DNA of 64,000 nt from the IMG/VR virus record IMGVR_UViG_3300028840_008185, positions 62,001 to 126,000 of that record; one strand, 5' to 3'. The position numbers were made by a program, and so were the translations under genes. Shown here in pieces: positions 1 through 55,871 of this stretch (positions are counted from its first letter, which is position 1; every line of letters begins with the position of its first letter). The notes beneath the pieces were generated by a model. The model saw only the letters and a program-made list of their open reading frames with translations. It was not told where the DNA came from and did no database searches.

Positions 1-916
1 AGAGCTTTATCTTTCCTAAGAACTGGTGGTTGGATGCGCGAGTCTCAAACAACAGCTTCGTAATCCACTGCCCAGTCGGGCTCTTGGGATCTATCCAGTC
101 TAATTCCGCATTCAATTTCTTATACTGGTCATCAATAGCACTTCCCTTACCTAGCACAGATGCAACATTTTTGGCGTCCAAGAAGGTGTCCAAAGTGTCA
201 TGTTTCTCCATGATCTTGTCTATGGTATCCAACCTTAGGGATGCCGGGTCAATCTTGTGTGGAAGCACATGAGGAATAAGGCTATAGAACTGACTGGTTA
301 GTTGGTCATATTCGCTGGAACCAGACTTAGTTTTGGCATTAACTCTGGATTTACAATCATCCAGAACCGCTCGTCCCTTATCAATCTGCTCTTTCGTCAA
401 TTGTCCAAGGGGACACTTCAGCGTCATTGTGATAAACTGGCCGGTTGTCCCAAACCAACCAGACACCATGCGGACCACTTCTGGGTGCAAAGATGAGCTG
501 CCATCAGCTTGCTTGATCTTTCCCTTAACTTTAAGCCCCGTCATGGGCTTCTTGATTTCCTTGGCTCCCTGTGAGCCAACATCCGTAATAGCCAGATCCA
601 CTTCTCTATAGGGATTTCTCTTTCTGTCCCTTTTCTTTCTAACTAGCGACTCATAGTCGCTTATACAGGCTGATTCGGATTGATAGTATCTGTGTTCCGT
701 CGTGGGATTTTTGGCTCCAACTCTTCCATACATCGTCATGATTCTGGCCTTACCGTTTGCAGCAACCTGAATCTCAGCATGATAGAACTTGTTATTGTTC
801 TTTGCAACGTCGGTGCAATTCCCTTCCCACCTTTTCGTGACCTTGAAAGTAGATGGAAAGTTGGGCTGCTTGGCATCGCCAGCCTTCCAAGCCTTCACCT
901 TCATAGATGCGCCCAT
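1..916 (-). CDS. PARP1-like ADP-ribosyltransferase, N-terminal 305 aa (WGR + PARP regulatory domain); continues beyond left edge
   Basis: Translated by hand (not in ORF track). ATG at 916 behind AGGAGG, open frame to window edge. WGR-type TDVAKNNNKFYHAEIQ...MYGRVG; regulatory-domain PLGQLTKEQIDKG, LTSQFYSLIPH, IDDQYKKLNAEL. Confidence 0.88.
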   Translation of the reverse strand, partial: MGASMKVKAWKAGDAKQPNFPSTFKVTKRWEGNCTDVAKNNNKFYHAEIQVAANGKARIMTMYGRVGAKNPTTEHRYYQSESACISDYESLVRKKRDRKRNPYREVDLAITDVGSQGAKEIKKPMTGLKVKGKIKQADGSSSLHPEVVRMVSGWFGTTGQFITMTLKCPLGQLTKEQIDKGRAVLDDCKSRVNAKTKSGSSEYDQLTSQFYSLIPHVLPHKIDPASLRLDTIDKIMEKHDTLDTFLDAKNVASVLGKGSAIDDQYKKLNAELDWIDPKSPTGQWITKLLFETRASNHQFLGKIKL

Positions 917-924
917 AGCTCCTC

Positions 925-1197
925 CTATACTAACGCTTTCAAAAATTCAATGTGAGCCTCAAGTCTCTCATGTCTTCTGCTGCCGGGAGCAATTCCCTGT
1001 AGCTTATCAATAGGCTCTTTCTTTTTACCCTTCAATTTCCACCGCTTCTTACCCTCGTTGAACCTAGCTAGCAGCTTATTAAGTTTCTTCTCGCACCTGC
1101 GAATCTCCGTTTTAATTCTGCGAATTCTGTTGCTGGCCTCATTGCGAATCTTCAGCTTGCCAGAACTAGACTTGCCCTTCGTCTTTCCTGCTACCAT
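925..1197 (-). CDS. Basic Lys/Arg-rich hypothetical protein
   Basis: 90 aa ORF, GGAGG RBS, helical and basic. Confidence 0.6.
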   Translation of the reverse strand: MVAGKTKGKSSSGKLKIRNEASNRIRRIKTEIRRCEKKLNKLLARFNEGKKRWKLKGKKKEPIDKLQGIAPGSRRHERLEAHIEFLKALV

Positions 1198-1210
1198 TGT
1201 TTCCCTCCAA

Positions 1211-1245
1211 TAAAAAAGGATACACCAACATCGGTGTATCCTTTT
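1211..1245 (-). terminator. Intrinsic terminator
   Basis: 13-bp inverted repeat AAAAGGATACACC/GGTGTATCCTTTT, followed by a U-run on the minus strand. Confidence 0.8.
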
Positions 1246-1270
1246 AAGGTTTGTATGTATTCGTTTTAGA

Positions 1271-1942
1271 TTATAGGAATTTCCTTATCTCTTCTAAGCC
1301 GACTGCGTAGTTTCCACCTGGAATCAGCATCGAGGAAAAAACCGACATTCTAAGATAAGAGATGCTGTCTACAACACCAACCAGCTCCCCTCTCTCATTG
1401 AACACGCCGCCGCCAGAATTTCCAAAGAATACATCGGCGGTGAATCTGTAAGTCAAGCGTTTGGGCTTTTCCTCCCAAACAAAATTGCTTAGGTTGCCCT
1501 TGGTCACTGTAGATTTAACGCTCATCGGAGTTCCAATGGCCCACACAGTATCTCCTATGTTAGGAGATTTTGTCGCCACTCTAACGTATGGGCCATCGCT
1601 TACCTCTTTCGCATAACCCATTAGTAAGGCTAAATCCTTTTTCTCATCTAACTTAACCACCTTCATCGGTTTGATGGCGCTACTATAGGTAAAAGTAATG
1701 TGTATGGCCTTCTTTCTTTTCTGCATGCTTTTTATCACATGGGCGGAAGTTATTACCATCATATAATCGCCACCCTTGTTCCAAATAATCGTTCCACTGC
1801 CGGAAGATTTTCCGACATTGTTAGTAACGGAAACGCTCGAAAAATACATATCTTCAATTTTTTGATTTACGAAACCAGAACGATTAAAGGTGTAGCAGCT
1901 AGCTAAGAATAGGCAAAGAATAAGTGCTAAGATTTTTTTCAT
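1271..1942 (-). CDS. Trypsin-like (S1) serine protease, probable lipoprotein
   Basis: TSAH (His), DLALL (Asp), GNSGGG (Ser); lipobox-like LASC. Confidence 0.88.
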   Translation of the reverse strand: MKKILALILCLFLASCYTFNRSGFVNQKIEDMYFSSVSVTNNVGKSSGSGTIIWNKGGDYMMVITSAHVIKSMQKRKKAIHITFTYSSAIKPMKVVKLDEKKDLALLMGYAKEVSDGPYVRVATKSPNIGDTVWAIGTPMSVKSTVTKGNLSNFVWEEKPKRLTYRFTADVFFGNSGGGVFNERGELVGVVDSISYLRMSVFSSMLIPGGNYAVGLEEIRKFL

Positions 1943-2355
1943 AGATTTTTAAAGAAACCCTCCTTATCGATTCTCTTAATCCATCGAGCAGCGAATCTGT
2001 CGGCGTACTTTTCTGCCGTCTCGTGGTCATCCCATCGGGGATCGTCTTCCCCGTATTTTTGATGGACATACAAATGTCCAATTTCATGAAGCATAATCTC
2101 AGCAAATCGCCGTGGCATAGTGCCTCTAAAACTAAAATCTAAGTCCACTGGCACATGAATCGTCCAGCCTTCGACATCGCAATAGGCGCACGGCGGATCT
2201 CCACTTTCTTTGCCTTCGGTTTTTGTATAATATTCTCTTAGCTTTTGAGTGCTGCTGTGAACCACAAGCCTAGCCTGTGGATAGGTGTTTGGAAGCCTAT
2301 CAAGAAGGGCTTTATATACTTTTCGTATCCTTTTTCTAGAATGAATATACATCAA
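1939..2355 (-). CDS. HEXXH zinc metallopeptidase-like protein
   Basis: MLHEIGH plus downstream E (HETAEKYAD). Confidence 0.6.
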   Translation of the reverse strand: MMYIHSRKRIRKVYKALLDRLPNTYPQARLVVHSSTQKLREYYTKTEGKESGDPPCAYCDVEGWTIHVPVDLDFSFRGTMPRRFAEIMLHEIGHLYVHQKYGEDDPRWDDHETAEKYADRFAARWIKRIDKEGFFKNL

Positions 2356-2430
2356 CCTCCCTCCCAGCAGAGTCTCCTTTCCATCTAAATGGACAGAAAT
2401 TAGTAGAGAGACATAAGTGGGCGAGAGAAT

Positions 2431-2463
2431 TAATAAAAAGGGCGGGCCGAAGCCCGCCCTTTT
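2431..2463 (-). terminator. Intrinsic terminator after hsp20
   Basis: AAAAGGGCGGGC-TTCG-GCCCGCCCTTTT, UUCG loop, U-tail. Confidence 0.9.
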
Positions 2464-2884
2464 AGTTGGCTCCCTTAATCTTTATTTGTTTGGGGACCGC
2501 TTCTTTCTTTTTGGGAATAGTAATCTTCAATATTCCCTTGTCGTAAGAAGCTGAAATCTTTTCACTATCAGCCGAGGTGGGGAGAGAGAAGGACCGAATA
2601 AATGCCCCGTAGTATCTTTCAGCCCTATAAAAATCACCTTCTTCTTTCTTTTCCAGCTTCTTCTCACCCTCGATGGTCAGCGTATTTTTTTCCACTGTAA
2701 TCTTCACATCTTTGGGGTCAACACCAGGAAGTTCAACATCGACCGCGATTTCTTTTGTATCTTCTCTTACATCTACCGGTGGCCTAAAGAGCCCTTCTCC
2801 AGTAAATTTATCAAAATCCATCAACCTTCTTACTACTTTTTCAGCCGCGCTGATCTCCCAAAAAGGACTCCATCTCATTAACAT
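2462..2884 (-). CDS. hsp20: Small heat-shock protein Hsp20
   Basis: Alpha-crystallin motifs: PPVDV, ELPGVD, ERYYGAFIRSFSLP, ASYDKGILKITIPK. Confidence 0.95.
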   Translation of the reverse strand: MLMRWSPFWEISAAEKVVRRLMDFDKFTGEGLFRPPVDVREDTKEIAVDVELPGVDPKDVKITVEKNTLTIEGEKKLEKKEEGDFYRAERYYGAFIRSFSLPTSADSEKISASYDKGILKITIPKKKEAVPKQIKIKGAN

Positions 2885-2929
2885 CTTAAACCTCCTTTGA
2901 AAAATATCTCAGTTTTCAACACATATACT

Positions 2930-2957
2930 AAGATAATCATTCTGGAGATTCAGTCAA
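2930..2957 (-). promoter_or_regulatory. Sigma70-like promoter upstream of hsp20
   Basis: TTGACT-N16-TATCTT with TG just upstream of -10; AAGGAGG RBS downstream. Confidence 0.5.
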
Positions 2958-2975
2958 GCCCCTTTTGTTGATTTT

Positions 2976-3482
2976 TTACGGCAATCGTCCCTCACGCCTC
3001 CGCTTTTTGTCCGCCCTGCGCTCAGTCCTGAAATGAACAGTAGCTTTCCTGGCCCAAGCGGGCTTGTGACTCATCTTGCTAAGGTAAAGCTCTGCGGCAG
3101 TTTTCAAGATGATTGCTGGGGGCAGCTCCCCAGCCTCCGGTGCTAGCTTAAGCACGCCGCGTTTTTTACTGTGTTCTGGATATTGAATGTGTTCTCTAAT
3201 ATACGCCCTACCCTTGGCCTTAGAGAAATTATCCTCTGGGGAACAAAGGGCAACTGCGTAGTAAAGCTTATCACCAACGCGCGTGCCACCAACAGTCATA
3301 GCACCATCACCCACCTTGAGATGAGCAAAAGTAAACTCATTAGACCAGCAGAGATATTCACGATGTAGCTCGTTCGCAAAATCAAACTCTACCACTGGCT
3401 CCTGCGTAGACTCTTTTTCCTCTTCAGTAAGTCCGTAATGCTCAAACCCGTAGAACAGTGTGTTGAAGTCAGTTTCATGCAT
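2976..3482 (-). CDS. Hypothetical phage-type protein
   Basis: 168 aa coupled ORF; ALCSPEDNFSKAKGR motif. Confidence 0.55.
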   Translation of the reverse strand: MHETDFNTLFYGFEHYGLTEEEKESTQEPVVEFDFANELHREYLCWSNEFTFAHLKVGDGAMTVGGTRVGDKLYYAVALCSPEDNFSKAKGRAYIREHIQYPEHSKKRGVLKLAPEAGELPPAIILKTAAELYLSKMSHKPAWARKATVHFRTERRADKKRRREGRLP

Positions 3483-4005
3483 TTTCTTCTCCTCTTGTTT
3501 TTCTTAGAAATCTCACAAGTTCATCAACGTGGATAGGTTTGAAATCCCAAACATCTACGCCAACATTGACATTCTTTCCTTTGACCTTCCACTTCTCGTG
3601 GACGTGGCCACAGATTATAAAGTCGTAAACATCTAATAGGTGAAGTTCTGGCGAGGTGTGGTTGTATTTCCAACCCACCTCTATTGGCCAATGCGTAAGG
3701 AAACATTTAAACTCAGCCAATTTTAGAGCTATACCATCAACCGCCAAGTCAAAACATTTCCAATGCCGCTTATTGTCGTGATTTCCCTTGACCAGAACAA
3801 CCCTGCCATTCAATCTGTCAATGTATTTATCCGAATGGAATGAGAAATCTCCCAAATGATACACAATATCATCTGGCATTATGACTTCATTCCAGTAGTT
3901 AGACATTTTGACATTCATTTCATGGGCATCACCAAACGGCCTATCGCAGTAGCCTATGATATTTCCGTGACCAAAGTGATGGTCGCTAGTAAACCAAACG
4001 CTCAT
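3475..4005 (-). CDS. Calcineurin-like metallophosphoesterase
   Basis: FTSDHHFGH, HLGDF, KGNHD, CGHVH; start adjusted to MSVW. Confidence 0.9.
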   Translation of the reverse strand: MSVWFTSDHHFGHGNIIGYCDRPFGDAHEMNVKMSNYWNEVIMPDDIVYHLGDFSFHSDKYIDRLNGRVVLVKGNHDNKRHWKCFDLAVDGIALKLAEFKCFLTHWPIEVGWKYNHTSPELHLLDVYDFIICGHVHEKWKVKGKNVNVGVDVWDFKPIHVDELVRFLRKTRGEENA

Positions 4006-4006
4006 A

Positions 4007-4531
4007 TTACCCCGCAAAGAAAGAGATTGTAGAGAGTGCAATTGGCAACGCCATATAGATTATGGCCCCAACCGAAAGCGCCTTAAACAACTTCACAGGG
4101 AGATCCAAGCGCCGCTGAAATCTCCACATATCGCTCTCGTTCGGTTCTCTAAAGAACACAGACACAAAGCCAGTGCAGAAATCGATGAAGTTGAACCAAG
4201 TAAAAGTCAAGAATATAATTGAAGCAACTTTGTTAGTGATTGCAGCAGATAGTATGGCTGCCATGATTATGAACACAGCATTGACTATCTTTGGCATCAC
4301 TGACACCAGCGCCTTATCTTTATCCGTAAGTTCCTTGCTTTCTTCTGTCTTCTCGTATTTCACATGAGCGAAAGTGAATCGCCCAAGCTTCCAAGACGGA
4401 AATGGCCACAGCTTAAACTTCCACTTCCATCCTATATACCTGGTGAGGCCGTGCGATAGTTCGTGGATTGTGTTCTGAAGCAACCAGAACGGGATAAGTA
4501 AAACCAGAAATACTATCCATTTGGTTTCCAT
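4007..4531 (-). CDS. Membrane protein with HEXXH (M50-like peptidase)
   Basis: TIHELSHG inside a hydrophobic segment, several TM helices, NxxD-like NFIDF. Confidence 0.6.
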   Translation of the reverse strand: METKWIVFLVLLIPFWLLQNTIHELSHGLTRYIGWKWKFKLWPFPSWKLGRFTFAHVKYEKTEESKELTDKDKALVSVMPKIVNAVFIIMAAILSAAITNKVASIIFLTFTWFNFIDFCTGFVSVFFREPNESDMWRFQRRLDLPVKLFKALSVGAIIYMALPIALSTISFFAG

Positions 4532-5402
4532 CTTTTAAACTCCTCTCTCAAAATAAGTTGTATATCCGATCTTCCAGGGAAGATGTCGTGAAGCATAATG
4601 TTAATGACATCTATGGCCTGAGGCCCATAATTAAGCCATGGAAATAATTGGTCCACAATTAAGTCTACGATATTTTTGTTGTATCTACTTCTTTCCATTT
4701 TCTTTATTATCATTTTCTATTTGAGGTTTCCTCTCCCAACAAACATGCACGCAATTGATTATACAACATAGGTCTGGCGTGAGCAATAAAAGATGCTGGG
4801 CTTTCAAAGCTCCGATATGACTTCATGAGCCTTGATAAGAGCTGGTAAATTTCTGATGGCATGTCAAAATGGAACCAACTCATATGTTTGTTTTCAATCA
4901 TCCTAATTTCCACAGGCTAAGCTCCATTAGCTCAAAATTCAACCGCCACCTAATCGGATCACGCAGCCCATAATATCTTATAAAGCTGTGCAACTGAATT
5001 TGACGAACTAACAACACCAATGAATCATGAGTCCTTTCTCCATCTTTATACAAAGATGTATTATATACAGCCCGCCTTATTTCCATATATACCAATCTCT
5101 TAGTAACTGATAATGAAGCCACGTATGAAATATATCATACGGATTATAACCGCGATCATAGAACCAGACATTAAACCCAAAAATTGGCTTTATTTCCATT
5201 TGTCTAAAATTAGTTTCCATATCGCTGTTCGCGTCTCCAACAGAGAATTTCTTAACTCATGATGCAACTGCCTTTTGGCCGGGTCAAGATCTCCATTTTT
5301 TCTCCGCAACTTATTAACGAACGTGGGCATAAAGTCTGGGTGGCTGGAATCAAAATCAGTGTCATAAAGCCACGTTCCAAAAGGCTTGACTTTCTTGATC
5401 AA
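4513..5402 (-). CDS. Chain of five coupled microproteins (5190-5402, 5077-5199, 4898-5086, 4710-4913, 4513-4713)
   Basis: Starts MIKK, MEIKP, MEIRR, MEIRM, MIIKK; 5077-5199 (40 aa) found by hand; overlapping junctions. Confidence 0.6.
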
Positions 5403-6454
5403 AATTGAACCCCTGTGCCCATATTAATCGTTAAGCCGCCTGCCGTATCCAGACCAATCTGTGGACTTAGATATAGATTGGTCAGCAACGGCATCGGTTT
5501 GCCCAAGTTGAAGGCAATTGGGGCGAAGGCAAAGTGCCCAGCTCTCCTTTCTATGTTGTATCCTAAACTAAATCTAAACAATCTAAACCAACTATCAACC
5601 TTCGTCTCGCCGTAAGATGATAGTGATATTCCTAAGTCCAAGCCCATAGACAGGATGCTATCCGGTCTTCCTGGGCCTTGAGCAAAGCCATACACATTTC
5701 CGCCCGCAAAGAAGTTGGCATCCAACCTTGGATTGAGCCAGAACATTCTATTTGGAGGCGGAGCTTGCCTATACTGAGATGAAACAAGATTAACCTTGTA
5801 GGTTTTCTTGGACTTCTCAGGCATAGAGTATTCTAAATTATGATGTAATACAAGCTGGCCACTTTCTTTCTTACTTACAGCCGTGACGAGCTTATACTGA
5901 CGCTTATAGACCTCATAACTCCAAGGCTTCTTCTTCGCCGCATTAAACTGAACTTCAGTCAGCGGGGCCAGATTTGTATCTGTGACGAGCTTGATCTGTG
6001 GCTTCTTGGTATAGCCGTGCGTATCAACCAGGCGACCATCATCGCAAGTTTCGGGATTGGGGTTCTCTGGCCCCTCGCTGTCGCTTGCTTCCAGCCTGGA
6101 AACTTTCCTGCCGATTACGCCAACGGTCTTTCCAACCGCCGTGAGCCTTGTGCCAAGCTTCTTAATGTCACCCTCAAGCGCGGCTAGGTCTTCCTTCTTG
6201 AGCATACCCTTGAGATCATTTTCTAGATCATCCTTAGTCGCCCAAGTCGTACTGCTCCTCACGAGACTTTCCGTGAGCTTCTTAAACTGCGTAATATCAT
6301 TTCTTAACTGGGCGTTCTCCTCGGTCAAACTCTTATAGACATAGTATCCTGCGACAATACCTAATGCAACTAAGATGACCAGAACGAAGTTTAGAATTGC
6401 CGAAAATTTGCTACTTCCACTTTTAATAATCACAGTGCCTTCCTCTACAGACAT
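5399..6454 (-). CDS. Membrane-anchored coiled-coil protein with beta-rich C-terminal domain
   Basis: N-terminal TM, heptad region, alternating hydrophobic strands, terminal ...GTGVQF. Confidence 0.6.
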   Translation of the reverse strand: MSVEEGTVIIKSGSSKFSAILNFVLVILVALGIVAGYYVYKSLTEENAQLRNDITQFKKLTESLVRSSTTWATKDDLENDLKGMLKKEDLAALEGDIKKLGTRLTAVGKTVGVIGRKVSRLEASDSEGPENPNPETCDDGRLVDTHGYTKKPQIKLVTDTNLAPLTEVQFNAAKKKPWSYEVYKRQYKLVTAVSKKESGQLVLHHNLEYSMPEKSKKTYKVNLVSSQYRQAPPPNRMFWLNPRLDANFFAGGNVYGFAQGPGRPDSILSMGLDLGISLSSYGETKVDSWFRLFRFSLGYNIERRAGHFAFAPIAFNLGKPMPLLTNLYLSPQIGLDTAGGLTINMGTGVQF

Positions 6455-7710
6455 TTTAATTCCTCTTTTACGAGTTGTATTTTTCCTCTTACCATCATCT
6501 CATAAGCTCGATTTGGATCCAGAATATTGAGGCAATTATTAATCACCCAGAACAAACCTTCAAGAATATCATTCGTAAAAATACAATGCAACGGATTGTT
6601 GAATTCCGGTGCCTGTTGAACATATTTGGTTTCCATCAAAGCTTTTAGATGTCCCCTTTTTGTTCCACTTATTTCCATCCGCTTTCCATAGAGCGCGTAA
6701 AACCTCTTCTTAAAGGAGGCCAAGACCAATTCATATCCATAAGTTTAACTGCTATTGGCCTAAACTCATACTCGCCCAAACCATATCTCATGCGAAATTT
6801 ATTTTTAAGATACAGGGAGCTTAATTCGTATGTTACTTTAATCTCCATTCATTTTCCTCGTAGCCTCTTTCACCTTAGATTTCAAAAACCAAACTGGCGA
6901 TGTATCGAATGTGAAGCCATTTGAGTATCTTAGAGCCACATATGGCAACAAAACTTTCTCAATACCCTTGATTATAAAAGAGCCCCACTCATTATTGTCC
7001 ATATATGTATAACCAGTATTGTCAAGAAGGTGAACACCCTCAAGACCATAAATGAATCTCGCTTTTGCATGCCCGATTTTATTAGCTTCTATCATTTTTC
7101 ACTATCCGGCTGCCATTTCACGAACACCACATCCTTCTTGGCAGGGCACCATTCGGGCCAAGAGCTTTCATCTTCCAGCGCCTCGTCTGGAATCTCTTTG
7201 TGGATTGCCCGGCATAACTCTTTATCATTAAGCCGAGAGCGTAGCACGCAATCAGCACATCCGTAAATTTTAATGAACATTTCTATCCCCTCATGACTAC
7301 TCGTTCAAACCCCGCAAAACTTTCAAGCTCTTCGTAGAGCGACCTCTTGAAAAATACCTTCACGGCGAAGATTGGACTACTCACCGCATTTCTTAATTCA
7401 AATTCAAAACCAGAATCTTCCATTGCCCAGCGTATAGGCGTATGGAATCTTTCATATTTTAAGGGTCTAATAATCATAAGTATGGCCTATTATATCTCCA
7501 ACAGCGAAGGGGCCTATCAATTTGGTGCTTTCCAATTTCCAAAGAGTTAGGATCTAGGATTCTAAGCACATTTGCTATACGACTAGACAGCCCAATCCAT
7601 TCCATATGATAATCAAGCACGGAAGACATATTAAGTTTGAACAATATTCTTTGCCTGATATCGTTGGTTACAACACGCCGCATATTACTCCCAGTTTTCT
7701 CCATCACCAA
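6445..7710 (-). CDS. Run of small hypothetical proteins (6445-6678, 6669-6848, 6838-7095, 7092-7280, 7283-7477, 7474-7710)
   Basis: Coupled ORFs; 6669-6848 MEIKVTY (59 aa) found by hand; 7092 has CxxC/C/C. Confidence 0.55.
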
Positions 7711-8035
7711 CCTCTATCTTGATGTTCTCTGGTTTCATCATTTCTTCTATCTTGGCCTCAAGATCCCTGTGTCCCTGTAGACGAGCCGCAGCTTCAAGCC
7801 TGAGCCAAGATTGAAACTTCTCGCTTTCCACCAAGCGATTGAAAGCTATTTTCTTATTCTGTTCCTTAGACCTTTCGTCGCGGCTGATTCCTTCTGCGCC
7901 TGATGCCGTATGTCTTATTCTGCAAGCGGAGGATGTCTTGTCCCCTTTTTGGCCACCGTGTTTCCCTGCGCGAAAATACTTTATATCTAGATCTTTCTTC
8001 GTTATTGAAAAAAGCAGCTTTTTCTTTTTTGACAT
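7685..8035 (-). CDS. Stand-alone RF-1 domain peptidyl-tRNA hydrolase (GGQ)
   Basis: RAGKHGGQKGDKTSSACRIRH; RSKEQNKKIA; no codon-recognition domain. Confidence 0.85.
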   Translation of the reverse strand: MSKKKKLLFSITKKDLDIKYFRAGKHGGQKGDKTSSACRIRHTASGAEGISRDERSKEQNKKIAFNRLVESEKFQSWLRLEAAARLQGHRDLEAKIEEMMKPENIKIEVGDGENWE

Positions 8036-8260: not shown

Positions 8261-8894
8261 TCAGCATAACTCTTTCCTGAAAGACTCTATTATGTACTCT
8301 CGTATCGGCTGCCCGAGTCCAAATAAGGTGCGCCTCTTAGCCTCCATCTTGAAAGAGTAGCCAACTTGGCGCCTAAATCCCCAATAGAAAACATTACGCC
8401 TGGCATCTCTGTGAATTGGTTTGATCATGTTATTCCTCAAGCTGATCTATCAGGCTCCATTTTAATTCAGTGCGCGTATCTCCACTCAGATGCAATAATT
8501 CTGCTTGGATTCGGGTTCTTATTCCCCACACATCAATGGGCCAGTGCCGCATCTCCCACAGCCATCCAGCTTTCATGTAAGAACGACGGATGTAATCTAC
8601 AAGATGCATATGTCCCACTAGAGATATTGAGCGATGCACAACTTACCTCGACATACGCATGCAGTTTGACATAAGCACGGCCAGATTTACGCTCAAACCA
8701 CTAAGACCGCTTTGAAGCCTATCTACCACTCCTACATGATCTCTTACCACTATATCATAGCACATATAATCTCTAGGTTTTGAAATAATTACACCATTAC
8801 TTATCAGGCATGTTGATATTACAGGCTCGTCAAAAAACTCCCATAAACATTGTCTAAGCCCTTCGGGGCGTTTTAGAGATATTGAGCGATGCAC
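8261..8894 (-). CDS. Three microproteins (8261-8428, 8430-8639, 8643-8894)
   Basis: 8261-8428 MIKPIH found by hand; the other two both start MHRSISL. Confidence 0.5.
8619..8894. repeat. Exact 21-nt direct repeat (8619-8639 and 8874-8894)
   Basis: tagagatattgagcgatgcac occurs twice. Confidence 0.95.
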
Positions 8895-10261
8895 TCTTCC
8901 GGCTCCTTGTCCGCTGGTCCCTTATATATCGGAAATCTCAGAGCAAATACGCCGTCTTTCTCAGGCTGGCGAGAATCAAACTCGACCTTAATGGTCTGGT
9001 CAATCAGATCATCGCCTTCCTCGTAGAACTCTATGCGCTGAGGATCCGTGAAGCCACCACCACATTTACCACAATCAATCCACTCCCCAGTCTCAGGATG
9101 AACCTGCTTGATGTAGAATCCACCAAGTCTGCCCATATTCTTACCACTGCCTTCGTAGTAGCCAGTGATTACGAACTCATCTTCATACTTGGGCTTACGC
9201 TTCCATATACCATCCGGTCTCTGTGCCTTGCCGTCAAAACTATAGGCTTTATCACCATATACGGCATCGGCGTCTAGAGCAACAAAGCCTTCGGCTTTAA
9301 GCTCCTTGGCCAGCTCCAGATCGTCACCCGTGCTTGTCTCATAGATCTTGATTGGACCGATATGAAACTTCCGCAGGATCCCCTCACGCAACTTGCTCTC
9401 TCGGAGCTTTCTGCGGCGATCTGAGGCGAGTCCGGTGCTGAGTGCTAGTCTGTCATCTAATTTCTGGAAAATCTTCCTCAGGGCCGCCAGGCGGCTTCTC
9501 ACGGTCAGTCTTGATATGAGATCGGCTCCGCTATAGAAAGCGATGTCAAAAACGTAATAGGACACTTTCCCAAGAACTTCCTTATCCTTTTTGCCCTTGG
9601 GAAACTTTCCAAGTCCCTGATATGCCAAAGCTAAATCGGGATCAGAGCGACATATTCTTGAGGTTCCCAAGAAATCATCCGACCCATCGTCTTTCAATAG
9701 GGTCATTTCGCCAAGAAGAATTGTGTTGTTTGGAAGGTCTAAAAGCTCAACACTTTCAATAATATGTGGGAACTTCTCCGTCACCAGATCCATACGGCGG
9801 GAGTAAATCTCAACCTCGTCTTCCCGCTTCACAATGATGTGGCACATGCCATCGCGCTTGAGAGTCCAGATAGCCCTCCCATCTTCCTCAAGCTTGGCCA
9901 GTTTCTTATCTGAAATCTCCTTCTTCGGCTTGAAGAAACAGAGATGTTTTGGTAGAGGTTCATCAAAATCAATAGCCGTGGAAAGCTCTTCCACTGGTTC
10001 GCCGTCTATGTATTCAACATAGCCTTGCTCGCGCTTCTTCCTGATGTCTCTGCTAATGCAAAACTTTACATACTCTTCCGGCGTCTGATAATCGGAATGA
10101 CCTTCAACGCCGCAATCCCCAGGAGAATCGGAAGTCTCCTGCATGGCCCCATCCAACTGACCCCACTTAACGATGTAGGTTTCGGGGTCGTTGGGATCCA
10201 CACCAATAAACCACACTTGCGGGCGCTTATTGCGCCCTGTTGTCTTCCTGAACTCTCTCAT
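8873..10261 (-). CDS. lig: ATP-dependent DNA ligase with N-terminal WGR-like domain
   Basis: KRDG adenylation motif, LLGE, YYVFDI, EGFV, KRKP, OB fold (GSGKNMGRLGG...LRFP); N-terminal KWGQLDG...KKREQGY. Confidence 0.9.
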   Translation of the reverse strand: MREFRKTTGRNKRPQVWFIGVDPNDPETYIVKWGQLDGAMQETSDSPGDCGVEGHSDYQTPEEYVKFCISRDIRKKREQGYVEYIDGEPVEELSTAIDFDEPLPKHLCFFKPKKEISDKKLAKLEEDGRAIWTLKRDGMCHIIVKREDEVEIYSRRMDLVTEKFPHIIESVELLDLPNNTILLGEMTLLKDDGSDDFLGTSRICRSDPDLALAYQGLGKFPKGKKDKEVLGKVSYYVFDIAFYSGADLISRLTVRSRLAALRKIFQKLDDRLALSTGLASDRRRKLRESKLREGILRKFHIGPIKIYETSTGDDLELAKELKAEGFVALDADAVYGDKAYSFDGKAQRPDGIWKRKPKYEDEFVITGYYEGSGKNMGRLGGFYIKQVHPETGEWIDCGKCGGGFTDPQRIEFYEEGDDLIDQTIKVEFDSRQPEKDGVFALRFPIYKGPADKEPEECIAQYL

Positions 10262-11111: not shown

Positions 11112-11409
11112 CTTTCCTTATTGATCTAATGGCCAACATAGCAATCAGGAAGCCAATTAAATCGCTAATAGTATCACCAACAATTTTATTTATGAATAAC
11201 TCGTTACCCGCATATGGGAAGTTGGGTATGTTTTGAACAACCCAATGTTCAAACACTTCCCACATGAAAGCAATTCCAACAGCACCCATCCAAGCATGAC
11301 GCCTGAATACAGAGTATAACATAACCGTGATGGCTATAAACCATACTACATGGTGCAGAGAATACGTATCGAATAAACTAGTCCCTGCTTTTCCCCAAAT
11401 TAGATCCAT
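10999..11409 (-). CDS. Small membrane protein
   Basis: 3 TM helices; HH, WEVFE and GD residues; overlaps rpsU. Confidence 0.55.
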   Translation of the reverse strand: MDLIWGKAGTSLFDTYSLHHVVWFIAITVMLYSVFRRHAWMGAVGIAFMWEVFEHWVVQNIPNFPYAGNELFINKIVGDTISDLIGFLIAMLAIRSIRKDENERRQKTSLEEEREKRAQSEAIGGGSQGRRSGRGD

Positions 11410-12727
11410 CTTGCATAGCTTTCTTAAATAACTCCTCTAAGCTCTTATCTGGGTGTACAGGAACCTGAGTCTCTTTCGGTTCCAAAGAAGCCAGATTGGA
11501 GTGCAGGTTAATGAGGGCAGCATTGCAATACTTACGAGAAACTTCTAAGTCCACAACGCTTTCCTCAATAATCTCGCCATCTTTTATATTACAGTCCAGA
11601 AGAGGCGTGAGGTTTTCTTCTGGTTCAACCGCTCCCTCTATTGCTAATAGATGTTTCCACTCACCATTTCGCTGATCCAAGAAGACTTGTTTGCGGCCAG
11701 GAAAGGTCTTCTTGCCTGCGGACAGTTTCATAAGTGGTCTATCATCTGTATCGTCATATACAACTTTATACACAGCCCCCAGAGAAGGAACATCTCTGGA
11801 AACAACAAGCTCAGTGCCCACAGCAAAAGTGTCGATAGGGGCACCACAACGGGCCAGGTTGTCTATGGCATATTCGTTGAGGTCATTAGACACAATAATC
11901 TTAGCTGACTGCTTGCCATTACTATCCAAAATTCCCCTAACTTTTTTGGACAATGTTTCCAGATTTCCAGAGTCCAGCCTTACTCCTTGTAGTAGCGGAA
12001 TTTGTGCGGCATAAACAGCGCCCATGTCCGTATCGTAGGTGTCAATTAGTAACACAGGGCTTCTATACACATCCTTAAAATCACTGAACGCTCTGGATTC
12101 ACTCTTAGAAACCATGACCCACATATGAGACATTGTTCCAGCAACAGGGATGCCGTATGTTCTGCCCGCCTCAACATTGGAGGTTGCCGCAAACCCAGCA
12201 AGATAGGCAGCTCGGGCTGCTCTAATAGCAGCTTCATGGTGGGTTCTTCTGGTGCCAAACTCTAAGACTGGTCGCCCACGGGCGGCGAGAACAATTCTCG
12301 CCGCCTTGGAGGCAACCTTAATATCATGGTTCAACACCGAAAGGGCAAAGGTTTCGGCCATATGAACTTCCGGCAGCGTTCCAGACACCCTTATAAGTGG
12401 CTCACCAGCAAAAGCAATCTCGCCTTCCGCCATCGCCCAGAAGTCACCCCTGAAGGAGAAATCTTCCAAGTATTTAGCGAAGTTAGACATAGAGAAAGCT
12501 GGCTTGAGAGCTTTAACTTCCCTGAGATACTTGATGTCGTCTGCCGTGAATCGCAGGCTGGTGAGGAAGTCTCTAATCTCCTCGGTCCCAGCCATCACGA
12601 GAAACCTTCTCTCTGGGGGCAACTTCCTCACAAAACCTTCACAAGTCACTTTCTTTTTGTGAAGACCTTTCACATAGTAAGCCGCCATCATTGTGAGCTG
12701 ATAAAGGTCAGTCTTTAAAGCGTCCAT
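11378..12727 (-). CDS. pncB: Nicotinate phosphoribosyltransferase
   Basis: TDLYQLTM, EFGTRRTH, TSNV, GTMSH (phospho-His), IDTYDT, VRLDSG, SNDLNE. Confidence 0.95.
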   Translation of the reverse strand: MDALKTDLYQLTMMAAYYVKGLHKKKVTCEGFVRKLPPERRFLVMAGTEEIRDFLTSLRFTADDIKYLREVKALKPAFSMSNFAKYLEDFSFRGDFWAMAEGEIAFAGEPLIRVSGTLPEVHMAETFALSVLNHDIKVASKAARIVLAARGRPVLEFGTRRTHHEAAIRAARAAYLAGFAATSNVEAGRTYGIPVAGTMSHMWVMVSKSESRAFSDFKDVYRSPVLLIDTYDTDMGAVYAAQIPLLQGVRLDSGNLETLSKKVRGILDSNGKQSAKIIVSNDLNEYAIDNLARCGAPIDTFAVGTELVVSRDVPSLGAVYKVVYDDTDDRPLMKLSAGKKTFPGRKQVFLDQRNGEWKHLLAIEGAVEPEENLTPLLDCNIKDGEIIEESVVDLEVSRKYCNAALINLHSNLASLEPKETQVPVHPDKSLEELFKKAMQDGSNLGKSRD

Positions 12728-12728
12728 A

Positions 12729-12857
12729 TTACCACCATATCTCCTGTTCTGGGAACAGAAATTTGCGTCCCCATCGATCATAGACCAAAACCCACTCGTC
12801 ATTATAATAAAATTCGTGGATATAAACCCTACCCAAAACAGGATTCCAGCCGGCCAT
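12729..12857 (-). CDS. 42-aa aromatic-rich microprotein
   Basis: Hand translation MAGWNPVLG...EIWW; exactly fills the gap between genes. Confidence 0.5.
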   Translation of the reverse strand: MAGWNPVLGRVYIHEFYYNDEWVLVYDRWGRKFLFPEQEIWW

Positions 12858-14184: not shown

Positions 14185-14185
14185 T

Positions 14186-30070: not shown

Positions 30071-30622
30071 TCACGGCATCTCCTTGAGACTCTCCACGAG
30101 CTTTCGTGATTCCAGATATTCCAAAACCGCCTTCGGAACCATGTGGGAAACATCTTTTCCTTGTTTAAGGAGCCAGCGTATATAAGAAGAACGAATCTGC
30201 AACACTGGATTGCTGGCGTATAGCTGGGCAGGAACCCACATAATATCCGCCAACTCTCTAATTTCATCACTCTTATACCACTTTTTATCAAACTCAAAGA
30301 ACAGGTCATCACCCAAGATAAGAGTATAGCGAGCTTCCGGATAGTCTGCAATTAAGTATTTCAACAAGTCGTAAGTTCTTCCAGTGTTTATTTCCTTTTC
30401 ATAATCTACAGCCATGACATTATGAGGGAAAAGCTTCCTAACCATGATGTTGCACATATATAACCGATTATAAAAAGACAGCATCTTATCTTTGAACGGA
30501 TGCTTATAGCAGGGAGCAACCAAAATCTCATCGAAATCTTCCCTGGCCAGAGCATATTGAATCATTGCAGCATGGCCTATGTGGGGCGGATTGAAGCTTC
30601 CTCCTACAATTCCTATTCTCAT
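30071..30622 (-). CDS. nadD: Nicotinate-nucleotide adenylyltransferase
   Basis: GGSFNPPHIGH, ILGDD, IRSSYIR. Confidence 0.9.
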   Translation of the reverse strand: MRIGIVGGSFNPPHIGHAAMIQYALAREDFDEILVAPCYKHPFKDKMLSFYNRLYMCNIMVRKLFPHNVMAVDYEKEINTGRTYDLLKYLIADYPEARYTLILGDDLFFEFDKKWYKSDEIRELADIMWVPAQLYASNPVLQIRSSYIRWLLKQGKDVSHMVPKAVLEYLESRKLVESLKEMP

Positions 30623-30632
30623 TTTAATCTCC

Positions 30633-31115
30633 CTAGTGTGGAACCGGTCTATCACACTCTATAACTATGACCTTGAAACCTTCGTATTCGCTGGGCAAGT
30701 CGGACTTTGAGCCATCTATTAAGTAAGCTTCGATGACTTCCTCACCATCTTCAAGCCCTATACCACAGCCCCACATATTACCATCGGTGTGGTTCATACT
30801 AAAAGAATCCACAGCTCTTTCTATTGGGCTCGGCTCTTCCAGAGCCCTTTCCCAGCCATATACCAATGGCGGATCCACACGCACTTCCTCATAGAGAACA
30901 ACCTCACCCTTTTTAACTGCTTCAATTTGACTTTGGAGCCAACCTATCGCACTTTCAGCAGCATTCACGAAAAGTATTGAGGCAGCGGTTTTTCCCATTT
31001 GCCATGCCATTCCTGGAGGGGGCAAAGCCCCAAAACCAAATTCTCTTTTTGGCGTGTCTTCTGGCAGTGGACAAGGGCTGGGAGGAACAGAATCCTCAAA
31101 GTCTCTCTTACCCAC
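30633..31115 (-). CDS. Hypothetical protein
   Basis: 160 aa, coupled to vWA gene. Confidence 0.5.
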   Translation of the reverse strand: MGKRDFEDSVPPSPCPLPEDTPKREFGFGALPPPGMAWQMGKTAASILFVNAAESAIGWLQSQIEAVKKGEVVLYEEVRVDPPLVYGWERALEEPSPIERAVDSFSMNHTDGNMWGCGIGLEDGEEVIEAYLIDGSKSDLPSEYEGFKVIVIECDRPVPH

Positions 31116-37127: not shown

Positions 37128-38489
37128 CTAACCAGTTGAAACTGTTTCTTTTGGCCTGCCGTTGCCCCTTTTTCTTCTTTTGAGTCTCCTCGCTGTTTTG
37201 CTTACCAGTTGTGGGCCATCTGGGCTTACGGGCTCATCACCCTCCTCTTCATTGCACACACCAGCCATCGTCTTCATGTGCTCCACAACCTCTTTCAATT
37301 CCTCAAACTTACCCTCGGTAATCGCCTCCTTGATTTCACCATACTGTCTAACAGTAATCTGGAGAGCCACTTCTCTCAAATAAGCAGGCGTCATACCTTC
37401 AGTAATTTCAGCAACTTCATCAAGATAAGCATTGGCCAGGCGCATCTCGAAAGAATCAAGGTAGGCTTTGACTATCGCTCTGCGCTGTTCAACATTGGGA
37501 AAATCAAACATGATGATCTCATCGAATCTTCCAGGGCGCCTCATCGGCTCGGGCAACTCGCCCAGATGATTCACGGCGCCCATGATTACTACGTTGCCAC
37601 TTCCCTTATATCTGTTGAGCGCTTCGACAGTGCCCAGCAGCATATCTAATCCCTGCTCTCCAATCCTATCCATATCATCAAACAAAACGACGCTCGGAGA
37701 AAGAGCCCTAAAGATCTTCTCCAAGGGAAGAGAATACTCCGACGCAAAGTTGAGAGCAGGAGCATCTATCACTATAAGCTGGCCATCGAGCATACTGGCT
37801 ATTTTAGCGGCCAGAGTCGTCTTTCCACAACCGGGCGGACCAAAAAGTAGGGAAGATCGATTGAGATTCATCTTCTGGAACCTCTTGATATTATCGAAGA
37901 ACTTTCCCTCATCGAAAGTAGAAACGTATGTATCCAGCGGAATCTCTATCTCTCTAATGCGGATGAATGTGTTCCAACCCTCTATGCCCATAACAACCGA
38001 GATGTTTTGGCCCATGTTTTCTCGAACGACTTTCGAGAAGGCATCAATAAACTTATCCTCGTCCTCTGCCCACATCCCTTCTAAAGACCCATTTTCAATA
38101 GCAAAATAGGCATCACAACCAGGCAACTCATAAAGAACAGTTCTAATATCACTGCCCTCTTCTTTCTTAACGAAAGGAGTGGAGTAAGGATAGTCAATCT
38201 CTTGTAGAGCATAATAAACAAGGCGTTCCATCCTATAAAGGATGGGCTTCAGACCAGTATCGCGCAGTCTGGACAAAAGATCCTTCTCCTCTTTTTCAAA
38301 GATCTTTTCAAGAGCATCGTAAGTGCTGGCCAAACTCATGCCCGCATATATAAGATCCTTCTTCTTGATGGCCAAATATATCTCAAAGCCAGCTCTACCA
38401 ACGGCTATGGCCTTTCTGATCTTCTCCTTGATCTTTCTCTTGTCGCGCCTATATTCTATTGTCGATTCTTTGTCGCGCTCAAACATCAT
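37128..38489 (-). CDS. Classic-clade AAA ATPase
   Basis: GPPGCGKT, VLFDDMD, second region of homology VNHLGELPEPMRRPGRFD. Confidence 0.9.
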   Translation of the reverse strand: MMFERDKESTIEYRRDKRKIKEKIRKAIAVGRAGFEIYLAIKKKDLIYAGMSLASTYDALEKIFEKEEKDLLSRLRDTGLKPILYRMERLVYYALQEIDYPYSTPFVKKEEGSDIRTVLYELPGCDAYFAIENGSLEGMWAEDEDKFIDAFSKVVRENMGQNISVVMGIEGWNTFIRIREIEIPLDTYVSTFDEGKFFDNIKRFQKMNLNRSSLLFGPPGCGKTTLAAKIASMLDGQLIVIDAPALNFASEYSLPLEKIFRALSPSVVLFDDMDRIGEQGLDMLLGTVEALNRYKGSGNVVIMGAVNHLGELPEPMRRPGRFDEIIMFDFPNVEQRRAIVKAYLDSFEMRLANAYLDEVAEITEGMTPAYLREVALQITVRQYGEIKEAITEGKFEELKEVVEHMKTMAGVCNEEEGDEPVSPDGPQLVSKTARRLKRRKRGNGRPKETVSTG

Positions 38490-39394
38490 ACCACCAGACC
38501 TTTTCTCTTCAAGTAATCTCGTGGGATTTCTGGGGGCGGCTCAGCCTTATGACGAGTGGCTTTCTCCATTTTCCTCATGGCCCTAACAACTTTACACTGC
38601 TCTTCCGTATAGCCGAACTCCTCGGGGTCAGTATCTTCCGCCAAACCCCGAATCAAGCCAAAATCTTCATCCTCTCTGCTGCACCACTCAATAGTTCCCA
38701 TCTCTTCTTGACCTGGGCGAGTGTAAGTTAGTGGAACTCCACAGAGATCTTCTAACTCTTCTTCGTCGTTGTGTTCCTCACCAACTCCCCAAAGATCTGG
38801 AGTAGGAACGGCATTGATGATCTCCTCTGGGACGCCCAGATGTTCCGCCAATTCCCATACTTCGCTCTTAAACAAGGAACCAATCCAATTAGAATCGACT
38901 TCTCCATCGCCTCCCTTTTGGTAAAACCGAACATACTGATCTTCATCCCTGTTTCCTGTTCCTTGTCTAATCCCTCCGCCAAACAACCTATTCACGAAGC
39001 GCCCAACGGGCGCCCTGATACAACTTCTAAAGCTGCCGTAAGTTGTTGGGTTCTCATTTTCATCAGGCCAAGGGAGCCCAAGACGCTCAAACTCTCGCCT
39101 AATTTGGGCACGAACCGTAAAGAACACGGGAGCCAGGTGTAGCTCTATGAAATTGAATCCAAAAGTCTTAGCAACCAATCTGGCTCGTCTAAGAGACTCG
39201 GGGGAAGAATTAACATCGCTATAAACCCCGATTACATTTTCGGAGCCAAAAGCCCTACAAGCCAGAGCAGCCACAACGGCACTATCAACGCCACCAGAAA
39301 TATCAATCTCAGCTTTGTCTGTATGAGCTTCGTTGGCCTGCTTTCTCATATACCAAACTATCTCTTCAACGAGCTTTTCGTAATCAAGAATCAT
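38486..39394 (-). CDS. nadE: NH3-dependent NAD+ synthetase
   Basis: ISGGVDSAV, GTGNRDE, KGGDG, LFKSEV, PTPDL; no glutaminase domain. Confidence 0.93.
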   Translation of the reverse strand: MILDYEKLVEEIVWYMRKQANEAHTDKAEIDISGGVDSAVVAALACRAFGSENVIGVYSDVNSSPESLRRARLVAKTFGFNFIELHLAPVFFTVRAQIRREFERLGLPWPDENENPTTYGSFRSCIRAPVGRFVNRLFGGGIRQGTGNRDEDQYVRFYQKGGDGEVDSNWIGSLFKSEVWELAEHLGVPEEIINAVPTPDLWGVGEEHNDEEELEDLCGVPLTYTRPGQEEMGTIEWCSREDEDFGLIRGLAEDTDPEEFGYTEEQCKVVRAMRKMEKATRHKAEPPPEIPRDYLKRKGLVV

Positions 39395-54328: not shown

Positions 54329-55309
54329 TTAACAAATGAAGAACTTTAGTACATAGCCCACCAACCAACAAAGACCTACAGCGCCTCCTATAACACCTGC
54401 CGTAAAAACTCCAGCAAGTAAGGTTCCCTTAACGCTATTTATTCTATCACGCCGCACACGAGCATAGTGCTCAGGATACTCTTTCCTATCTCGCCTCTCC
54501 CTTTCCCGCGCTTCTCGCCTCTCCCTGATTTTTTCTGGTATTTTAAAGAGAGAGATAAAGCCGTGGATTAAGTATGAGAAACCAAGCGATAAAATACCAC
54601 ACCAAACCAGAAACATAAAACCCCATACGACCGTGGGATTCTTACTGGTAGAACAAGTATCGGCGGGCATAAAAGAAACATTTATAATTCCGGCAACAAG
54701 CCCTAAAACTATTCCTGCTACTTTGGTCCTAAAATGCATTGGTCTTTCCTTAAAACTTGAATGTTGGATACTCGACGCTTGTTTTCTTAACGGAGCCTGT
54801 AGATCTTTCTACCCATCCCGATTTGAATTCTCTTATTATTACCTTGCCTTTGGGACTAATGCCTACCACCACTCCCTCACATTTTATATTACCTCTCCTA
54901 CTTGTTTTCCAAAATTCTATCGCATCACCGACTTTTATTTCCTCATCCATTACCAATCCTCCGGAAGCGGGCCAAGAATATCCGCAAGGCTCTCGCCAGT
55001 TTCCTCGCCCCATTGTTCTCTTGGAGCTAATCGCTGGCCAGAAGAATTGTAGTCTGCCCCACACTCACAAGTATTCGTGAAGCCATCACAATAAACTTCC
55101 TCACCGCAATCACACTCAACGAGAGTATATCCTGGAACTACATGTGAATACTCAATTGTTTCCCTTCTCCAATACCCATCGCAGTTAGGATTGGGACACG
55201 GCCTCTCAGTCAAATCTTTCGTATTTCCACAACCACACTTATCACATCCAACATGCTCTTCTTCATATTCATGTAGTTTGGAAGCCACACGCTCAATCAC
55301 TTTAGACAT
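54329..55309 (-). CDS. Hypothetical proteins (TM 54329-54739; 54750-55064; Cys-rich 54950-55309)
   Basis: TM helices; multiple CxxC. Confidence 0.5.
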
Positions 55310-55871
55310 TTTTCTTATCTCCGTCCAGAATTAAGCACTCAAATGGAATATCATCGGACAATACAATTCTATCATCCGCACTCTTATAGAACTTCACACC
55401 TTTATACCTGGCGTGAGATATAGCCACCTCAATCAATACTACATGCCTGCTGCGCCTACGAGCAGCCTCAATAGTAATGTCTTTGTCGTATGATAAATGA
55501 ACCTTCTGCCTGTTCATAGCACAGAGTCCAGATTTCTTGATGTCTTTTAGAGCTTCTTCTGTGGTCGCATGATAAATAGGCTTATCAGGCAAAATCTCTG
55601 TGTAGCCCTCGACCTCAATCGAATGCCCATGACCAGCTCTAATATAGCCCCCCTCTAACTCAAACCTCGTCTTAACTTTTGGATCCTTAGACGGACGGGT
55701 TAGAGAAATAACATCTTGTTTTGATACACTAAACTTCATCTTGGCGTTTAGCTTTTTCAACAGGTCATCCAGTTTGCAGCACCCTCTTGAATCCAGCTCC
55801 AAATCGCCCGGCTTGTGCCGAAGCAGCAAGCTCATATATTTAGACAGCTTTTTCTTATCCTGGGATTTCAT
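55302..55871 (-). CDS. kptA: RNA 2'-phosphotransferase Tpt1/KptA
   Basis: MSLLLRH, RFE, IRAGHGHSI, YHAT, MNRQKVHLS. Confidence 0.92.
   Translation of the reverse strand: MKSQDKKKLSKYMSLLLRHKPGDLELDSRGCCKLDDLLKKLNAKMKFSVSKQDVISLTRPSKDPKVKTRFELEGGYIRAGHGHSIEVEGYTEILPDKPIYHATTEEALKDIKKSGLCAMNRQKVHLSYDKDITIEAARRRSRHVVLIEVAISHARYKGVKFYKSADDRIVLSDDIPFECLILDGDKKNV

Follow-up and report, generated by a model that had tools for sequence, protein, structure and literature searches.

A PARP1/2/3-type ADP-ribosyltransferase gene and its recurrent neighbour in a huge uncultured phage

Why should a phage carry an enzyme built like human PARP1, PARP2 and PARP3, and what would it do with it? This question is raised by the left end of a 64,000-nucleotide stretch of DNA (hereafter the window), which covers approximately positions 62,001-126,000 of the 318,373-bp IMG/VR contig IMGVR_UViG_3300028840_008185. 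The source is a ~318-kb uncultured phage whose sequence is present in sediment and seawater metagenome runs. A minus-strand frame that leaves the window at its left edge had been read in the initial annotation as a hidden PARP1-like enzyme in a phage-like genome, accompanied by an NAD+ supply and a macrodomain eraser. The phage origin is supported by the viral contig itself and by its synteny with two other huge viral contigs. As described below, the frame belongs to a complete PARP gene, and a role of its product in phage DNA metabolism is somewhat favored.

A complete PARP gene across the window edge

From the ATG at 916-914 to base 2, the minus strand was read as 305 sense codons with zero stops, as initially annotated, and the four motifs quoted for this frame were all located in the translation, namely NNKFY (residues 41-45), YGRVG (63-67), PLGQLTKEQI (169-178) and FYSLIPH (210-216). 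The AGGAGG preceding the ATG shares bases with the stop of the gene on its upstream side (925-1197). The window holds the 5' three-fifths of the gene, with the following features:

2..916, minus strand: first 305 codons of the 500-codon PARP gene (open frame)
921..926, minus strand: AGGAGG ribosome-binding site, 4 nt 5' of the ATG at 916-914 (read from the sequence)
623..820, minus strand: WGR domain, residues 33-98 (Pfam PF05406, E 6.5e-13, 49 bits against a cutoff of 22)
116..484, minus strand: helical regulatory domain (HD, or PARP_reg), residues ~145-267 (Pfam PF02877 and AlphaFold2 model)
2..109, minus strand: start of the ADP-ribosyltransferase (ART) catalytic domain, residues 270-305; H366, Y400 and E475 fall past the window edge

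The remaining 195 codons and the stop codon are located to the left of the window, at L001:10916-11503 (L001 being the PARP locus on the IMG/VR contig), so that the full gene spans L001:10001-11503 and its 500-aa product is terminated by a stop codon. There is nothing biologically hidden about the enzyme: the listing of open reading frames (ORFs) omits frames that cross a sequence end, and this frame is absent from it because it crosses the window edge. A 500-aa protein recovered by a word-indexed protein search (P0001) is 100% identical to the 305 residues encoded in the window and carries precomputed PARP, PARP_reg and WGR domains. It is encoded on a 73.8-kb JGI contig from a separate sample (L009), representing an independent second assembly of the same phage gene. 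The two assemblies differ in one residue, G335S, with Gly in the IMG/VR contig and Ser in the JGI contig, and near-identical phages are therefore present in separate samples. In both assemblies, the sequence beyond the window edge contains neither a premature stop nor a non-ART domain, but 195 codons with the PARP catalytic domain and its H-Y-E triad.

Domain searches assign the whole protein. The PARP_reg match (PF02877) covers residues 167-259 (E 1.7e-13, 51 bits against a cutoff of 26.8) and, like the WGR match, is far from anything expected by chance. The catalytic domain (PF00644) was matched in the full protein at residues 285-462 (E 3.1e-24, 86 bits against 26.7), of which only 285-305 are encoded inside the window. 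In phmmer searches against PDB, residues 160-298 of the window fragment were aligned with human PARP1 from its HD to the first strands of its catalytic domain, and with the full-length protein the motif LWHGT, the Tyr of ALYHAE and SKS..NYC were aligned with PARP1 H862, Y896, K903 and Y907. The N-terminal domain aligns with the PARP3 WGR structure 2eoc. Across 39 homologs with 32-79% identity, there is no variation at H366, K407, Y411 and E475 or at K43, G64 and G67 of the WGR domain, and Y400 is nearly invariant; the H-Y-E triad is retained in 120 of the 128 representatives of the wider PARP family. No family was found for the 305-aa fragment in PHROGs, and no NCBIfam model matches the PARP protein.

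Modelling with AlphaFold2 from the 39-sequence alignment gave a mean pLDDT (predicted local distance difference test) of 84 and an HD of six helices (residues 145-165, 175-193, 200-213, 224-227, 232-255 and 261-267). The predicted fold superposes on DNA-break complexes of PARP1 and PARP2, the top Foldseek match in PDB being 7s6h_B, human PARP1 WGR-HD-ART on a double-strand break (E 9e-31; TM score 0.62 by query and 0.65 by target), followed by PARP2 on DNA or nucleosomes (6x0l_P and 7aeo_A). Judged by its sequence, the protein is therefore a PARP (ARTD) of the WGR-HD-ART type, in the H-Y-E clade of diphtheria-toxin-like ADP-ribosyltransferases, and the PARP1/2/3-type identity proposed initially is borne out by the three Pfam matches together with the conserved triad. 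The window alone, showing only part of the gene, might have suggested a chance frame, a pseudogene or a catalytically dead relic, but this is refuted by the full 500-aa ORF with its stop in two assemblies, by more than 120 full-length homologs of 485-500 aa, by the invariant catalytic residues and by the confident structural model.

The phage enzyme shares with human PARP2, PARP3 and the corresponding PARP1 module the domain order WGR-HD-ART, the H-Y-E triad and the SKS...NY motif of the NAD+ site, at ~21-25% identity, but is without zinc fingers, BRCT domain and long N-terminal tail. No HPF1-type cofactor is known from prokaryotes. The signature of the WGR domain is Y63-G64-R65 rather than WGR; in the family, YGR was found in 64 of the 128 representatives and WGR in 45, and Tyr in place of Trp is the usual form in bacteria (PMC5966428). 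The acceptor loop, which connects the HSV strand with the catalytic Glu, has a length of 17 aa, compared with 38-51 aa in eukaryote-type sequences (~40 in the human enzymes), and the catalytic Glu is preceded as N-S-E instead of Y-N-E. Moreover, ahead of the catalytic His there is an extra 48-aa insertion at residues ~314-361 (L001:10940-11083, outside the window), which forms two helices (316-330 and 350-359). The length of this pre-His segment is bimodal among the 128 representatives, with 11-23 aa in most relatives and 44-60 aa in the others, and it thus marks a long-insert subfamily to which the phage PARP belongs.

An exhaustive search retrieved 3,116 representatives at E <=1e-3, of which only 52 were at <=1e-30. 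Relatives with at least 60% identity were seen only in metagenomic and viral contigs. The nearest ones in species-representative genomes are from metagenome-assembled genomes (MAGs) of Kofleriaceae (46-47%), Berkiella (43%) and Omnitrophota (40%); these genomes were scanned with a single degenerate pattern, and the five loci found therefore underestimate the bacterial distribution. Two huge viral contigs of 244 kb (L002) and 316 kb (L003), whose PARPs are 66-71% identical to that of the phage, are syntenic with it around PARP, sharing a peptidase, HSP20, a 351-aa protein, a GroEL-like chaperonin and other genes. The syntenic position in three huge viral contigs shows that PARP is stably inherited in this huge-phage lineage. 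Nothing was found in INPHARED by megablast of window 1-6000 or tblastn of the 305-aa fragment; tblastn with the full-length PARP recovered relatives in 16 deposited phage genomes, whose matched parts are ~25-45% identical, the full-length matches being at ~25%.

A partner gene and DNA ligases beside PARP

Downstream of PARP, to the left of the window, the phage encodes a 376-aa protein (L001:11799-12929), here called the partner. Its residues 79-170 match the gene directly downstream of PARP in both L002 and L003, and a 232-aa gene in three Kofleriaceae MAGs whose start overlaps the PARP stop. In 9 of 14 distinct loci (L001/L009, L002, L003, L004, L005, L006/L010/L011, L012, L014 and L015), domain-specific hidden Markov models detected the partner domain no more than 4 kb downstream of PARP. 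The following partner homologs were located:

L002:11661-12425: partner homolog
L003:11438-12307: partner homolog
L010:9488-10186: partner homolog
L012:10710-12170: partner homolog
L014:7592-7942: partner homolog, N-domain only
L015:11124-11585: partner homolog, N-domain only
L019:4001-4681: partner homolog
L021:4001-4663: partner homolog
L022:4001-4702: partner homolog

Two small neighbours were not counted as parts of the module. The 99-aa ORF that separates PARP from the partner gene (L001:11503-11802) and a 90-aa basic protein encoded on the upstream side of PARP (window 925-1197) are each confined, among the searched loci, to L001 and L009.

The partner family has at least 187 members, mostly of 220-240 aa and many of them from Myxococcota. 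An alignment of 12 sequences (23-81% identity to the first) revealed an N-domain, a variable acidic linker and a conserved C-domain, with 17 invariant residues in the N-domain (F-T-x-L-D-x-S-N-x-x-K, R-H-R, V-R, L-Y-H and Y). Both domains were modelled confidently by AlphaFold2 (pLDDT ~90), and the N-domain has the helix-helix-helix-strand-strand topology of a winged helix. No Pfam family covers it, and Foldseek of the partner returned nothing at E <=1e-3, the best leads being winged helices of TFIIIC, TFIIE-alpha and PadR at E ~0.04; leads in the ESM Atlas (PadR, TFIIE, HTH_39 and DUF1413) agree with a winged helix. The C-domain matches Pfam MazE_antitoxin (SpoVT/AbrB) in 5 of the 12 members (best E 2.7e-4) and AbrB chains in PDB weakly (E ~0.9). 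Foldseek of the C-domain gave no significant match, leaving the AbrB assignment made by eye without support from that search, and its matches to sliding clamps had low probability and were judged to be noise. With these folds, the partner is probably a DNA-binding protein.

The linkage was also approached from the other side, starting from three divergent partners on long bacterial contigs, two of which proved to lie beside PARPs. One, on a 1.15-Mb contig, is followed after 58 nt by a WGR-reg-PARP gene. The second, on a 249-kb bacterial contig, is in an operon with an ARH gene (ADP_ribosyl_GH) beside two tandem WGR-PARP_reg-PARP genes (L021:4663-8663), a locus that by its predicted gene content is a cluster of writer, eraser and partner. 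The third adjoins, in divergent orientation, a gene for LigA, a NAD-dependent ligase, and there is no PARP at a distance of up to 4 kb. The PARPs beside the first two are 25-31% identical to that of the phage, and conservation of the linkage at this distance indicates that it is either old or repeatedly selected.

DNA ligase genes are a further recurrent feature, being present near PARP homologs in L012, L013, L015, L016, L010/L011 and L022. The ligases are ATP-dependent in L012 and L016, while LigA is adjacent in the Kofleriaceae and within 3-6 kb in L013 and L015. In addition, a T4 endonuclease V-like gene lies directly downstream of PARP in L015, and ARH or NADAR genes lie near PARP homologs elsewhere, NADAR being near the homolog in L015. 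The window carries a ligase gene as well, co-oriented with PARP and ~8 kb upstream of it, for which the NCBIfam models of non-homologous end joining (NHEJ) and ATP ligases match below threshold:

8873..10261, minus strand: ATP-dependent DNA ligase, LigD/NHEJ-ligase-like (Pfam DNA_ligase_A_M, E 2.7e-13)

Tentatively, PARP and the partner may constitute an undescribed, ancient cassette of prokaryotes and phages, often accompanied by a DNA ligase and sometimes by ARH, in which the partner would serve as a dedicated acceptor, a DNA-end adaptor or a regulator; this is possible, though we would not call it probable. The PARP-partner(-ligase) linkage was not found described in the open-access literature and the partner is nameless, so its novelty is provisional.

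The AbrB/MazE-like C-domain also invites a different explanation, namely a conflict module resembling a toxin-antitoxin system, in which PARP would be an NAD+-consuming or ADP-ribosylating toxin held in check or transcriptionally controlled by the partner and deployed in bacterial abortive infection or in phage superinfection exclusion and competition. Tight coupling of the two genes, with stop/start overlap in Kofleriaceae and either gene order occurring, and a sporadic distribution that resembles horizontal transfer are consistent with it. However, the most conserved part of the partner is the winged-helix N-domain and not the AbrB-like part, and the N-domain occurs alone in L014 and L015; the linkage with genes for LigA, ATP ligase, T4 endonuclease V-like protein and ARH points to DNA repair; and the phage invests in the synthesis of NAD+ (see below), not in its depletion. 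A conflict module is accordingly rated as unlikely.

Other observations on these loci concern related sequences. One or two copies of the partner-type C-domain, without the winged-helix N-domain, occur in another gene, located downstream of the GroEL-like gene, in the three syntenic viral contigs (L001:15406-16365, L002:15500-16591 and L003:14995-15933). A protein of ~510 aa with faint DUF4379/CapR matches is encoded directly downstream of PARP in L012 (7542-9086) and L017 (7440-8951), and DUF723/DUF4379 genes are scattered in L013; this DUF4379/CapR-like protein may be a second recurrent neighbour of PARP or a mobile gene family.

NAD+ supply, erasers and the proposed function

The substrate of the enzyme appears to be provided by the phage itself. 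The window contains, on the minus strand, candidates for the three steps of NAD+ synthesis from nicotinate, and also a second NAD+-consuming enzyme of the ART fold:

11378..12802, minus strand: nicotinate phosphoribosyltransferase, PncB type, Preiss-Handler step 1 (TIGR01513, 409 bits against a cutoff of 297)
30071..30655, minus strand: nicotinate/nicotinamide mononucleotide adenylyltransferase, NadD-like, step 2 (Pfam CTP_transf_like, E 1.6e-11, above cutoff)
38486..39394, minus strand: NAD+ synthase NadE, step 3 (TIGR00552, 102 bits against 63.65; Pfam NAD_synthase, E 2e-28)
55302..55871, minus strand: Tpt1/KptA RNA 2'-phosphotransferase, NAD+-consuming and of the ART fold (Pfam PTS_2-RNA, E 1.3e-27)

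PncB is further supported by NF009131 (401 bits against 330) and Pfam NAPRTase_N (E 3e-29). For the NadD-like gene the best NCBIfam matches are all NadD/NMNAT equivalogs, each just under its cutoff (TIGR00482, 102 against 112 bits), and the NCBIfam models of RNA 2'-phosphotransferases match Tpt1/KptA at E 4e-38, below cutoff. PncB, the NadD-like enzyme and NadE together form a predicted Preiss-Handler route, in line with the initial expectation of an NAD+ supply. A nicotinamidase (PncA), which would return the nicotinamide set free by PARP to the pathway, was not accepted at 32434-33459, the Isochorismatase match there being partial and scoring 19.4 bits against a cutoff of 27.

The expected macrodomain eraser was not recovered. 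Among ~85 window ORFs of at least 80 aa, there was no Pfam match to Macro, PARG, ARH or NADAR (E thresholds 1e-3 to 1e-2; the search did not extend to the other ~254 kb of the contig), and the one macrodomain lead from a six-frame motif scan (NAAN...GAGI at 36963-37013, in the ORF 36792-37115) was shown by Pfam to lie in a small membrane-like protein. In this respect the window differs from the genomes of Herpetosiphon aurantiacus and Clostridioides difficile CD160, whose enzymes HaPARP and CdPARP are likened to the phage PARP by their common WGR-PARP_reg-PARP architecture, and which also encode PARG and MacroD erasers (PMC5966428). Taken together, the initial observation is confirmed as a whole, and the interpretation attached to it is partly supported, in that enzyme identity, triad and NAD+ supply hold and the macrodomain does not.

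We consider it slightly favored, with a probability of roughly 0.55, that the phage PARP, a minimal PARP2/PARP3-like enzyme, serves phage DNA metabolism as an ADP-ribosylation module switched on by DNA nicks or ends. By homology with PARP1-3 and HaPARP, the WGR domain would bind a nick or a DNA end, and this binding would relieve the autoinhibition exerted by the helical domain. The ART domain would then use NAD+ to ADP-ribosylate the enzyme itself, nearby DNA-bound proteins or DNA termini, the partner being an obvious candidate acceptor among the DNA-bound proteins, and the NAD+ consumed would be replenished by the PncB-NadD-NadE pathway of the phage. The setting is proposed to be phage DNA replication, end processing and nick sealing, because of the coupled downstream partner and the recurrent ligases beside PARP homologs. 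Activation by DNA nicks or ends is inferred from homology; HaPARP is reported to require DNA for activity (PMC8120803), and both HaPARP and CdPARP make poly(ADP-ribose) in vitro (PMC8120803, PMC5966428).

Several observations weigh against this proposal. Although DNA ligases recur beside PARP homologs, that of the phage is non-adjacent, at a distance of 8 kb, and the partner was not found near PARP in 5 of the 14 loci (L007, L013, L016, L017 and L018) nor in the vicinity of PARP in Klebsiella phage FBKp34 or Xanthomonas phage Xoo-sp13. The lack of an eraser in the window means that a reversible signalling cycle is not demonstrated. The insertion ahead of the catalytic His is without counterpart in PARP1, and the short acceptor loop together with N-S-E makes chain elongation uncertain. 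The H-Y-E triad is necessary but not sufficient for chain elongation, PARP3 being a mono-transferase, and poly- and mono-ADP-ribosylation cannot be told apart from the PARP sequence. Finally, no RNA run is among the runs listed for the sequence.

The same lack of an eraser would fit irreversible modification, and hence a host-takeover effector in the manner of T4 Alt and Mod, in which the WGR domain merely places the enzyme on DNA. Host takeover has been proposed for jumbo-phage PARPs by Iyer et al. (PMC7824862), and genes for host manipulation abound in the window (a Ser/Thr kinase-DnaJ fusion, PP2C, Lon and prokaryotic E2/JAB). Nevertheless, the autoinhibitory helical domain and WGR are conserved as in DNA-activated PARPs, and the PARP-partner-ligase linkage is also found in the chromosomes of bacteria, which have no host of their own to subvert, making a takeover function doubtful.

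A narrower possibility is that DNA is the main substrate, with terminal phosphates of the linear phage genome or of nicks being ADP-ribosylated, which would either protect these ends against host exonucleases or flag them for the ligase. DNA termini are in vitro targets of ADP-ribosylation by PARP1-3, the predicted WGR-HD-ART fold is closest to PARP1/2 in DNA-end complexes, and NADAR and T4 endonuclease V-like genes accompany the homolog in L015. Yet nothing in the sequence separates DNA from protein acceptors and no DNA-ADP-ribose hydrolase was found in the window, and such end capping as the main function appears quite improbable.

Genomic setting, known systems and significance

The rest of the window is that of a huge phage. 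Approximately 100 of its 122 candidate ORFs are on the minus strand, and GC skew is negative across the entire window (-0.15 to -0.23), weakening to -0.09 in one 4-kb bin (32001-36000). No tRNA genes were found in the window. Genes outside the proposed module include the following:

1271-1942: trypsin-like peptidase
2462-2884: HSP20
19080-21422: Lon protease
21426-22025: M10-like metallopeptidase
15226-15918, minus strand: prokaryotic E2 family D (E 3.6e-7), with Prok-JAB matches within 925-26400
46888-47928, minus strand: DnaJ domain fused to a Ser/Thr protein kinase (E 4e-31)
35972-36805, minus strand: PP2C phosphatase, 10 kb from the DnaJ-kinase gene
33471-35327, minus strand: weak kinase-like protein of 618 aa

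The E2 and Prok-JAB matches suggest a ubiquitin-like conjugation/deconjugation pair, and the DnaJ-kinase, PP2C and the second kinase-like protein suggest a phospho-signalling set of the phage. Translation and folding genes typical of huge phages are also present, comprising ribosomal protein S21, an RF-1-domain protein, IF3, peptide deformylase and a GroEL-type chaperonin (L009:1-100, 2883-3233, 13736-15349, 16372-16893 and 16890-17399; window ~7685-8035 and ~10999-11409), with adenylosuccinate synthase and APS kinase further left. An RNA-repair set includes, besides Tpt1/KptA, a CCA-adding/PolyA_pol enzyme with an HD domain, an HD_4 protein, a calcineurin-like phosphoesterase and an RlaP nucleotidyltransferase (window 55302-55871, 42047-43456, 52702-53235 and 3475-4041, minus strand; RlaP match within 925-26400).

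PARPs of phages have been noted before. One was recorded in Aeromonas phage Aeh1 in 2005, PARPs were reported in a "few jumbo phages" in 2021 (PMC7824862), and PART/PARP was counted among the most frequent viral ART families in 2022 (PMC9503650). Annotated examples are those of Klebsiella phage vB_KpM_FBKp34 (gp111, with all three domains in its GenBank annotation), Xanthomonas phages Xoo-sp13 and XacN1, Cellulophaga phages phi4:1 and phi17:2, and Aeh1, which are only ~25% identical to the PARP described here. In 2024, jumbo phages carrying pncB-nadD-nadE, with a PARP1-type "DNA damage sensor" among the NAD+ consumers, were described in Microbiome on computational grounds (PMC11662467). These "NAD-jumbo phages" have the same combination of Preiss-Handler genes and PARP, but they are from gut metagenomes and have the three NAD+ genes clustered, whereas the present phage is from sediment and seawater and has them dispersed over 27 kb. 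Given these reports on bacterial, phage and NAD+-jumbo-phage PARPs, the enzyme is a divergent member of an already described kind, and the bare observation of a phage PARP with NAD+ genes repeats published comparative genomics. In the open-access literature searched, no phage PARP characterized biochemically or by other experiments was found.

In summary, a compact PARP of 500 aa with intact catalytic and regulatory elements, its own NAD+ pathway and a conserved candidate partner offers a clean model for asking which role DNA-activated ADP-ribosylation has outside eukaryotes and why phages invest in ADP-ribosylation. What prokaryotic PARPs do has been unclear ever since their discovery, and the PARP-partner-ligase linkage provides a concrete hypothesis on this point that can be tested. 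If the tentative cassette is real, PARP signalling would gain a defined two-component form outside eukaryotes, in which the partner would have a role comparable to that of accessory factors in eukaryotic PARP1/2 signalling, and the PARP-partner cassette carried by huge phages would be their own response to DNA ends or nicks.

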